Sequence record: NC_061447.1
DNA: 64,000 bases
Reading direction: 5' to 3' (one strand)
Shown: positions 1 to 1,294 of the stretch, piece by piece
Numbering within the stretch: position 1 is the stretch's first letter
Layout: each line of letters starts with the position of its first letter
Notes under the pieces: model-generated
Database searches by the model: none
Told to the model about the DNA's origin: nothing
Seen by the model: the letters and a program-made list of their open reading frames with translations, nothing else
Position numbers and translations under genes: made by a program

Positions 1-1
1 C

Positions 2-760
2 ACGCTCAACCAGCTTGCTCAATATCCAGAGCAGAAAGGCCAGTATGCAGGTCTGCGTGTACCACCTGTGAAAGAACTGAAAGCGAACGTGCCTGATGCG
101 TTTGATGAAGCAAGCCAGCTCGTTAGCAATCTACTTGGCAACGCTGACTTCGTAAGCGTACAACTGCCTCTGGCTGTTGCTGGTGATACCACGTTTGCTG
201 CGAACGTACTGACTACCAATATGATTGGTGATCAGGATGATGTTCACACGTTCTCTTTGTGGGCACGTCACCTACTGTCTATCGGTATCTATGCTTACGC
301 CGATGAAAGCGGTCTGCATATCCCAGGTCTGAACTATCACGAACTGCAAGCGGCTGTAACTCAGGATGAACTCGGTGCATTTGCTGGTATCAGCTTCGAA
401 GCCACCAGCCGTCAACGTCAGACTCAGATGCTGACTGTGATTGCAGACGTGTTCCCTGAACTGACCCGCTACGTGCTGGACTATCAGTTGCAGACAGGCC
501 AGGATAAAATCTATCTGGCGCCAGAGCAGGACTTCGCACAGGCTCTCGACCTGATTCTGCATAAGCAGATTGAAGGTTACGATGACCAGTACGACCTGCT
601 GATGCAGCAACTGGCGTACATCGACGACTGGTATAACTTCGATAACTCTATCGTTCCTGTTCCGTTCACGCTGAAAGCTCTGGTCAATCCTGTGGAGTTC
701 TGGGATGTGAACGTCGAAGAAACGTCTGTTGTGATCACTAACGGTTTCGTTAGTCACAAC
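2..760 (+). mobile_element. Intein (C-terminal part) with probable degenerate LAGLIDADG-type endonuclease region
   Basis: Block F/G-like FWDVNVEETSVVITNGFVSHN is followed by Ser (nt 761). Upstream LLSIGI resembles DOD endonuclease block E/H. Confidence 0.85.
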
Positions 761-1294
761 TCTGACGTGCGTGTTCGTCTGGCTTCTCGTGCTGTGCCTC
801 AGGGCTGGCCGACAATGAAAGACGCACCGGGTATCGTTGGTGAGAAGTCTGTAACTGTTGAAGGTGGTACCGACCGCTACCGTTTCATTGCAGCCAAGAC
901 CATCAAGAACAAGATGGGCGGCATCCCTAACCAGCAGACTTGGTTACGTCTGTGGGAAGCTGACGGCAACGGTGAAGCGCGTGGCTTCGACCCAGTGTTC
1001 GATACGTGGCATTACCTGAAAACTCTCGGCCTGATCAACGGCACTCGTAAGAGCTTCAAGATCAAGGCGCCATGCCCGCTCGCATCTGACGTTAAGATGG
1101 ACTGGGATGACTTCCGTACTCTTATCAACGGCAGCAAAGAGCAAGTTGTTGGCGTGTGTAAGAAACTGAAAGTCAAACCTGCTGGCCTGCGTCTGTGGTG
1201 CTTCAAGTTCGTGCAGTCTACCAAAGGCAACGAGATGTTGAAGAACGCTATCAGTAAGTCTGCGAAGACTTCTGATGACGATGACGACGAGTAA
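2..1294 (+). CDS. recA: RecA/UvsX-like recombinase, 5'-truncated by the window edge, interrupted by an intein (C-extein starts at 761)
   Basis: The frame is open back to nt 2. After the intein end, SDVRVRL...KTIKNKMGGIP...GFDPVFDTWHYLKTLGLI aligns by eye with the RecA C-terminal ASVRLDI...KVVKNK..P...GI...ELVDLGV..LI. Confidence 0.75.
   Translation, partial: TLNQLAQYPEQKGQYAGLRVPPVKELKANVPDAFDEASQLVSNLLGNADFVSVQLPLAVAGDTTFAANVLTTNMIGDQDDVHTFSLWARHLLSIGIYAYADESGLHIPGLNYHELQAAVTQDELGAFAGISFEATSRQRQTQMLTVIADVFPELTRYVLDYQLQTGQDKIYLAPEQDFAQALDLILHKQIEGYDDQYDLLMQQLAYIDDWYNFDNSIVPVPFTLKALVNPVEFWDVNVEETSVVITNGFVSHNSDVRVRLASRAVPQGWPTMKDAPGIVGEKSVTVEGGTDRYRFIAAKTIKNKMGGIPNQQTWLRLWEADGNGEARGFDPVFDTWHYLKTLGLINGTRKSFKIKAPCPLASDVKMDWDDFRTLINGSKEQVVGVCKKLKVKPAGLRLWCFKFVQSTKGNEMLKNAISKSAKTSDDDDDE

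Follow-up and report, generated by a model that had tools for sequence, protein, structure and literature searches.

Inteins that interrupt RecA-family recombinases are the closest described counterparts of the element considered here, which lies in the recombinase gene of Erwinia phage pEa_SNUABM_33 and is encoded in part at the start of a 64,000-nucleotide stretch of that genome (record NC_061447.1, also MZ443779, to which tblastn gave a 100% match; this whole stretch is called the window hereafter). The intein of P. horikoshii RadA, the most thoroughly studied example of a recombinase intein that splices conditionally (PMC4513877, as cited in PMC4760082), likewise sits in the ATPase core of its host and matches the phage element in structure (Z 14.7, 4e2t), but is an archaeal mini-intein placed at the P-loop and devoid of an insert domain. 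Host-dependent splicing has been described for the M. leprae RecA intein (PMC5874633). The M. tuberculosis RecA intein (RecA-a, PI-MtuI) shares the RecA host, and its splicing domain superposes on that of the phage element at Z 16.4 with a root-mean-square deviation (rmsd) of 2.3 Å over 130 residues. Its insertion site presumably follows VVKNK, ~32 residues downstream of the site discussed here, with Cys as the +1 residue; the NCBIfam model for intein-containing RecA (NF007072) matches only the extein part of the phage protein (54 bits against a 1024-bit cut-off). The LAGLIDADG-type class 1 inteins, represented by PI-PfuI, TliVMA, PhoVMA and PI-SceI, are alike in having a Hint domain split by an inserted domain, Cys1, a block B (S/T)xxH, a block F Asp, a terminal His-Asn and a +1 Ser, Thr or Cys, and inteins of this type are the best Foldseek matches (3e-6 to 4e-5), aligning over 211-264 residues at Z 14-16 in VIA-align. 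They differ in sequence (~12-17% identity) and in the insert, as the phage intein contains one LAGLIDADG-like half rather than two, lacks a LAGLIDADG motif or conserved acid, and has a four-helix domain in place of the second half.

Read together with the sequence that precedes the window, the frame at positions 2-1294 (+ strand), which has no 5' end inside the window, is the 3' part of a longer gene, and this recombinase gene is very probably interrupted by a splicing-competent class 1 intein whose removal would leave a 495-amino-acid recombinase and a free intein. The precursor comprises an N-extein of 318 amino acids (ending GGDALKFY), an intein of 344 (CFDRDTLI...GFVSHN) and a C-extein of 177 (beginning SDVRVRL), with coordinates as collected in Table 1. 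A sequence-only reading of the window had already proposed a RecA/UvsX-like phage recombinase split by an intein, and this proposal is borne out by an exact gap in homologues, by the splicing residues, by the Hint fold and by the RecA and phrog_97 matches of the exteins. On translation, the junction at window 760/761 and the C-terminal string quoted for it are both as claimed, the Asn codon ending at 760 and Ser+1 starting at 761 (...FWDVNVEETSVVITNGFVSHN↓SDVRVRL..., where ↓ marks a junction). The KFY↓C N-junction that had been predicted upstream is present as well, GGDALKFY being followed directly by Cys1 (...PEYEPGGDALKFY↓CFDRDTLIRTDHG...), and the upstream sequence also holds Walker A and B motifs and intein block A.

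The boundaries of the insert are exact at the protein level. Intein-less alleles, for which a comparison with related phages had been suggested, were found with ALKFY and SDVR contiguous, as in the 501-amino-acid RecA of Dickeya phage JA11; in an alignment of nine proteins, the insert corresponds to a single exact gap of 344 amino acids at ALKFY↓SDVR in eight intein-less proteins of 489-503 amino acids, and the C-extein is collinear with intein-less homologues. A C...HN insert occupies this point in 101/121 members of the recombinase family, and the KFY↓C...HN↓S arrangement is far beyond chance.

When searched separately against profile and sequence databases, both exteins are recognizable as recombinase. 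The N-extein matches Pfam PF00154 (RecA) at 82.7-84 bits (cut-off 27 bits), the match reaching model position 211 and ending at ALKFY, and contains a Walker A-like GGEQSCKST and a Walker B-like VIVDS; the UvsX-like recombinase family phrog_97 is matched by the N-extein at 2e-52, by the C-extein at 1e-18 and by the recombinase as host protein at 1.9e-78. Because N-extein residues 241-318 align with residues 140-218 of E. coli RecA (chain 1n03_A; ...VVDS...NQIR.K.GVMFG.PE...GG.ALKFY), the insertion is placed after the equivalent of E. coli RecA Tyr218. The match to the bacterial RecA equivalog TIGR02012 (81 bits) is below its cut-off of 325, and sequence comparison assigns the recombinase to a phage RecA-like family of its own, common to the jumbo phages JA11, PaBG, Lu11, phiRSL1 and BcepSauron. 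The P-loop is UvsX-style, with Cys replacing the Gly ahead of Lys, and a family-specific insertion of ~100 amino acids lies between Walker A and Walker B.

Among 40 diverse inteins aligned from this site (site 3 in Table 1), the only invariant intein positions are C1, H69, H343 and N344, and Ser+1 is invariant in the 40 full-length proteins aligned. In a set of distinct close and middle-distance relatives, C1, H69, D326, H343 and N344 are each found in 58/58, T6 and S342 in 57/58 and S66 in 56/58, so that a full class 1 splicing set (block A Cys, block B SxxH, block F Asp, His-Asn and +1 nucleophile) is recognizable in the sequence. An AlphaFold2 model of the intein, built from the 40-intein alignment, reached a predicted local distance difference test score (pLDDT) of 93.1 and a predicted template modelling score of 0.91. 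Searched against the PDB with Foldseek, the whole model returned significant matches that were all inteins (PI-PfuI at 3e-6, TliVMA and PhoVMA), with PI-SceI at 1.9e-3, just below the threshold; in VIA-align, the VidaL, NrdJ-1, Ssp/Npu DnaB, Mtu RecA and gp41-1 mini-inteins superpose at Z 16-17 and rmsd 1.8-2.3 Å over 127-134 residues, which are drawn from both ends of the predicted structure. Splicing itself would follow from this conserved chemistry. Introns of group I or II and a fusion of genes were rejected as explanations, since the reading frame is uninterrupted, the fold is that of a Hint domain and the boundaries are exact in the protein; an Rfam scan of the locus found no intron. Of four public sequencing runs, all of them contigs, two gave no coverage and one covered the 3' part only. 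In a wastewater metatranscriptome, both junctions are spanned by short contigs, none of which omits the insert; this is weak evidence, as the contigs come from relatives and may be DNA, and it bears on continuity rather than on expression or the absence of variants.

Table 1. Coordinates of the recombinase gene, its intein and the insertion sites of the family. Bare numbers are window positions; G000 is the phage record and L001 the locus around the start of the window (window position = L001 position minus 1500).
Feature	Position	Strand	Remarks
Window (64 kb)	G000:C1:199238-263237		3'-terminal part of the 263,237-bp Erwinia phage pEa_SNUABM_33 record
Locus L001	G000 197738-202037		
Complete recombinase open reading frame	L001:275-2794	+	839 amino acids; start 1226 bases upstream of the window
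N-extein	L001:275-1228	+	Upstream of the window
Intein, 344 amino acids (Cys319-Asn662)	L001:1229-2260 = window -271..760	+	Followed by Ser663-DVRVRL
Intein residues 1-91	L001:1229-1501 (G000 198966-199238)		Upstream of the window; Cys1 and block B S66-x-x-H69
Intein residues 92-344	1..760	+	Exact gap in homologues, AlphaFold2 model, Hint fold
End of N-terminal Hint lobe, intein residues ~92-110	1..58	+	Model strands E84-92 and E105-110; range aligned to mini-inteins, intein residues 1..344
LAGLIDADG-like half-domain (alpha-beta-beta-alpha-beta-beta-alpha), intein residues ~114-222	68..394	+	Model secondary structure, fold matches
D140 of the motif-helix equivalent LVSNLLGNAD	146-148	+	
Four-helix domain, intein residues ~223-305	395..643	+	Helices H223-238, 243-256, 269-277, 285-304
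C-terminal Hint lobe, blocks F and G, intein residues 306-344	644..760	+	...EFWDVNVEETSVVITNGFVSHN; Asp326, His343, Asn344
C-extein, 177 amino acids	761..1291	+	Ser+1 nucleophile at 761-763, then DVRVRL, KNKMGG and an acidic DDDDDE tail
Acidic DDDDDE tail, recombinase C-terminus	1274-1291		
Stop codon of the recombinase gene	1292..1294	+	
Site 1, MFG↓SPEYEP			9/121 proteins; inteins of ~350 amino acids, C...HN↓S
Site 2, EYEP↓CG(D/N)ALKFY			16/121 proteins; inteins of 138-398 amino acids, C...SN↓C, Hint_2 with or without LAGLIDADG_2
Site 3, ALKFY↓SDVR			101/121 proteins; site of the intein described here

The LAGLIDADG-like core topology occurs once in the middle of the intein, the remainder being four helices. 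Folded alone, the LAGLIDADG-like unit attained a pLDDT of 88.7, and its best VIA-align match was WhiA (8dy9_I, Z 6.6 over 86 residues), followed by I-DmoI (Z 4.9) and by PI-TkoII, E-DreI, I-Vdi141I, I-CreI, I-CvuI, I-Tsp061I and I-MsoI (Z 4-4.5); more than ten LAGLIDADG proteins stand in the top 50 of 48,161 chains, at only Z 3.8-6.6, a weak signal. Foldseek searches with the isolated middle domain likewise gave I-CreI and I-MsoI (E 0.05-0.1) and I-CeuI as the best matches, E lying at 0.05-0.3 overall, while a fold search of BFVD with this domain returned its own relatives only and the leading ESM Atlas match (LAGLIDADG_3, 0.86) was below the 0.9 trust level of the tool. No match to Pfam LAGLIDADG_1, LAGLIDADG_2, LAGLIDADG_3 or Hom_end was found in the intein at E up to 1, nor any to a PHROG nuclease family. 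WhiA, a non-catalytic, DNA-binding derivative of the LAGLIDADG proteins, resembles the half-domain in also being without the catalytic signature, the match being weak, but is a free-standing transcription factor with two LAGLIDADG domains and a helix-turn-helix.

As the intein has a single half-domain, an acid at position 140 in only 24/58 relatives (Asp; V, A, S, N or Q in the others) and, without flanking glycines there, no G-D/E-G signature, its LAGLIDADG-like nuclease is probably inactive. The earlier remark that no clean LAGLIDADG motif is visible therefore holds and can be widened to the absence of a conserved catalytic acid. LLSIGI, by contrast, which had been read as a remnant in the endonuclease region, sits at the turn between alpha2 and beta3 (G186 in 57/58), outside the motif helix. 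For the suggestion that homing may be decayed, "decayed" is too strong a word, because the middle part is under purifying selection, with a ratio of nonsynonymous to synonymous substitution rates (dN/dS) of 0.11-0.21.

The four-helix domain is the best-conserved part of the insert. Its motif, FPEL...YD....Q.AY.ED, includes D289 (55/58), Y297 (56/58), E/D299 (57/58) and D/E300 (58/58), with Q294 also near-invariant. A fold search with this domain gave no convincing match (Z at most 5.5), and no family match was obtained. Site-3 inteins of 239-301 amino acids consist of Hint and the four-helix domain only, without the LAGLIDADG-like half (hhalign 99.6%, E 2.6e-24). Within that half, a variant sub-domain (...IKELIESAVIVN...), shorter by seven residues, was noted in family members P0008, P0023 and P0032, as compared with P0002 and P0012; the exteins of the inteins with the shorter variant belong to three different sub-clades, which suggests module shuffling inside the intein.

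Constraint extends over the whole insert. Across seven Alexandravirus loci, median dN/dS was lowest in the exteins (0.08 in each), rose to 0.11 in the helical domain and 0.12 in the N-terminal Hint lobe, and was highest in the LAGLIDADG-like half (0.21); the intein as a whole is constrained, not decaying, and its GC content (0.51) is comparable to that of the exteins (0.50-0.53). The site-3 intein is present in 53 GenBank phage records, that is, in every GenBank phage of the clade, which comprises all Erwinia and Dickeya Alexandravirus, Y3-like and Yoloswag-like phages together with pEa_SNUABM_5, Yersinia phage fHe-Yen9-02, Alcaligenes phage Afa-NA1 and Salmonella phage Sen-NF. Within this phage lineage, the intein is ancient and has reached fixation, and it appears to have diverged broadly with its host gene but much faster: relative to Yoloswag, identity is 85% in the N-extein and 34% in the intein. 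When 1.84 billion representative proteins were searched exhaustively with phmmer, only four matched, all of them phage RecA with an intein at ALKFY↓SDVR, to which site the intein family is, by sequence, private; a scan of IMG/VR with the single intein query returned six close relatives only.

Exchange between phages is superimposed on this history. The extein tree, for which the insert residues were cut out of the natural proteins by script, and the intein tree are concordant on major groups. Family members P0038 and P0022, however, share exteins that are 97% and 92% identical and inteins that are only 35% identical, whereas the intein of P0038 is 87.5% identical to that of P0041, with exteins at 79%; an approximately unbiased test rejects vertical grouping (p = 2e-6), the group having been chosen after inspection of the tree. 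Similar extein/intein mosaics were seen for P0026 and P0033 and for the trio P0008, P0023 and P0032. Since these swaps replace an intein where one is already present, ordinary recombination in the conserved flanks is a better explanation of them than nuclease-driven homing.

On this evidence, the following route may be proposed. The open reading frame (L001:275-2794) would encode a 93.5-kDa precursor of the RecA-like recombinase, in which the 344-amino-acid class 1 intein sits in the ATPase core just after loop L2, behind the Tyr218 equivalent, and from which, judging by its conserved chemistry, it would excise itself after translation by the standard pathway. Cys1 would form a thioester, Ser+1 would attack this thioester to give a branched ester, Asn344 would cyclise with the aid of His343 and Asp326, and an O-N shift would join Tyr318 to Ser663, releasing a 495-amino-acid recombinase of 55.1 kDa and a free intein of 38.4 kDa (masses computed from the parts). 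The LAGLIDADG-like half-domain would most likely no longer cut DNA, and both it and the family-specific four-helix domain would be kept by selection, most simply since the precursor must fold in order to splice. Whole intein alleles are occasionally swapped between phages, through recombination in the flanking exteins.

Several points weigh against this account. The case for splicing rests on residue conservation and a predicted structure, and in the profile searches that had been recommended for Hint and LAGLIDADG domains, the Pfam Hint and intein models PF14890 and PF07591 do not match the intein at E up to 1, as with the LAGLIDADG models, and the NCBIfam model intein_Cterm (TIGR01443), at 14.7 bits, falls just below its 15.6 cut-off. 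For the middle part, the resemblance to known folds is weak (Z 4-6.6; Foldseek E at least 0.05). In this phage, an Asp (D140) does occupy the position of the LAGLIDADG catalytic acid, and homodimeric single-motif enzymes such as I-CreI and I-MsoI are among the best structural matches of that part. Given D140 and these homodimeric matches, purifying selection on the middle part could reflect a working nuclease. Lastly, the conservation of polar residues in the four-helix domain exceeds, as far as the alignment indicates, what a passive linker needs. The missed profile match is a limit of profile sensitivity, no defining feature of an intein being absent, and the lack of annotation follows from the same failure of the profile libraries to detect this intein. 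A CUE-domain match to the intein (E 0.014, in Pfam, PHROGs and NCBIfam scans of the intein alone) was dismissed as chance, and a PDB sequence search with the intein alone gave no intein match; a search with the alignment profile (A2) was dominated by the RecA exteins.

The alternative that survives best, while still unlikely, is that the intein remains mobile, its middle part acting as a single-motif LAGLIDADG homodimer of the I-CreI kind that cuts empty ALKFY↓SDVR alleles. In addition to the selection on the middle part, the position of D140 at the end of a motif-like helix and the resemblance to I-CreI, I-MsoI and I-CeuI, this view could draw on the distribution of the intein, as the presence or absence of the site-3 insert changes at least six times on a 121-protein extein tree and P0084 (with intein) and P0102 (without) have near-identical exteins. 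The erratic acid, the missing signature, the silence of the Pfam and PHROG nuclease families and the low fold scores, headed by the non-cutting WhiA, all speak against it; moreover, the fixation of the intein in all 53 GenBank phages of the clade leaves few empty targets, and the swaps observed are of intein for intein at an occupied site, which a homing nuclease could not cleave.

Improbable, and more so than continued homing, is the recruitment of the intein as a post-translational switch, in which the four-helix domain, with or without the LAGLIDADG-like half, would tie splicing to a signal such as single-stranded DNA, redox state or the stage of infection and in this way time the activation of the recombinase. 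Such a role would accord with polar positions of the helical domain that hardly vary (D289, Q294, Y297, E299 and D300), with the retention of this domain even in the shortest site-3 inteins and with the fixation of the intein across a wide phage clade; for it, P. horikoshii RadA (PMC4513877, as far as it is cited in PMC4760082) and M. leprae RecA (PMC5874633) offer precedents. The same conservation is, on the other hand, equally explained by the folding needs of splicing, and a switch would be dispensable, because related phages such as JA11 have intein-less alleles. In a wider form of this idea, just as improbable, the whole site-3 family would have ceased to be selfish and become a domesticated regulatory module, in which the four-helix domain, kept even in the minimal versions of 240 amino acids, and a nuclease-dead, DNA-binding LAGLIDADG-like half would sense an infection or DNA-damage signal and release the active recombinase only then.

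Far less credible still is a function of the 839-amino-acid protein at full length, with the insert as an integral domain that does not splice, or as a Hint domain capable of cleavage only. The failure of standard intein hidden Markov models to match is what this explanation has in its favour; it is at odds with an insert that interrupts, within the RecA core, a strand left intact in every intein-less homologue, with the invariance of every residue for the four splicing steps, the +1 nucleophile included, and with a fold that is that of splicing inteins.

The relationship to mycobacterial RecA inteins, of which the sequence-only reading had made much, proves to be different from the one supposed. 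The actinobacterial site was measured from genomes with a back-translated pattern, His-Asn↓Ser-Pro-Glu-Thr-Thr-Thr-Gly-Gly, which was found in at least 120 species, mostly Actinomycetota (among them Mycobacterium intermedium, M. interjectum, Rhodococcus, Nocardia and Micromonospora). The arrangement there is ...INQLREKIGVMFG↓CMNYSTRVTL...HN↓SPETTTGGKALKFYASVR..., with a median intein length of 364 amino acids and KIGVMFG↓C on the N side; this ~364-amino-acid type is taken to be RecA-b (the M. leprae type), its position being measured. The site is thus MFG↓SPETTTGG, 14 residues upstream of ALKFY↓S, and not the "RecA-b-like site" that had been named, and the belief that mycobacterial RecA-b inteins follow ALKFY, ahead of (A/S)SVR, must be given up, as ALKFYASVR is uninterrupted in all of the at least 120 actinobacterial loci translated and none has an insert at FY↓AS. 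Although both inteins have Cys1, a C-terminal His-Asn and Ser+1, are ~350 amino acids long (~350-365) and lie between L2 and the ALKFY strand, a horizontally moved mycobacterial RecA-b intein at the same site, the weakest of the explanations, is refuted for this intein by the different site and the lack of sequence similarity (phmmer against 99 actinobacterial RecA inteins, 0 matches at E up to 0.01; hhalign, probability 1.9%), and the search of 1.84 billion representatives returned phage RecA site-3 hosts only.

The idea of a site and intein shared by phages and mycobacteria, while failing for the site-3 intein, does hold for another intein of sister phages that is absent from this one. Three insertion points (MFG↓S, EYEP↓C and KFY↓S) fall within 14 residues of the phage RecA family and are occupied in differing combinations. 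The actinobacterial RecA inteins have homologues at site 1 (phmmer 1e-30 to 1e-65), which are the true phage counterparts of the M. leprae type and for which a shared phage-mycobacterial site holds; the site-2 inteins are homologous to the actinobacterial ones as well (1e-38). In pEa_SNUABM_33, sites 1 and 2 are empty (...AVMFGSPEYEPGGDALKFY↓C...; L001:1187-1228). Carriers of a site-1 intein among the relatives include pEa_SNUABM_17 (L007:3001-4032 and the region upstream), P0007, P0019, P0020, P0035, P0061 and P0106, of which P0007 is 96% identical overall to the recombinase precursor described here, and this intein looks recently mobile, because proteins whose exteins are identical differ in whether they have it. 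Site-2 inteins were seen in P0066, P0071, P0076, P0085 and P0091-P0101, always together with a site-3 intein, and even where the exteins are identical they may have or lack the endonuclease. Outside the gene, a CrcZ-like Rfam match at L001:195-253 (+), 5' of the recombinase start (21 bits against a gathering score of 95 bits, E 0.009), is almost certainly due to chance.

The intein is real and was previously unannotated. The GenBank product name is "hypothetical protein" here and "putative RecA protein" or "UvsX-like recombinase" in sister phages, the GenBank records of the recombinase in these phages contain no intein annotation, and a full-text literature search found no description of an intein in it. 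In 53 GenBank phages, a gene of 830-850 amino acids (~1190 with a second intein) is accordingly listed as "hypothetical", "RecA" or "UvsX-like", whereas the real recombinase would, to judge from its predicted product, be ~495 amino acids long, the intein having been missed by standard profiles. Some phages of the Erwinia/Dickeya Alexandravirus, Y3 and Yoloswag group are used in biocontrol cocktails against fire blight.

Beyond annotation, dozens of natural Cys1/Ser+1 inteins, 240-470 amino acids long, are available from the family, and a few might be developed into splicing tools. It is the conserved four-helix insert that could lift the case above routine. If the reading of site-3 inteins as a domesticated module were true, no earlier phage example would exist of recombination controlled by conditional protein splicing. 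With three insertion sites, one of them common to phage and actinobacterial RecA and occupied by homologous inteins, the phage RecA family provides a compact natural system for the study of site preference, co-occupancy and the traffic of inteins between phage and cell.

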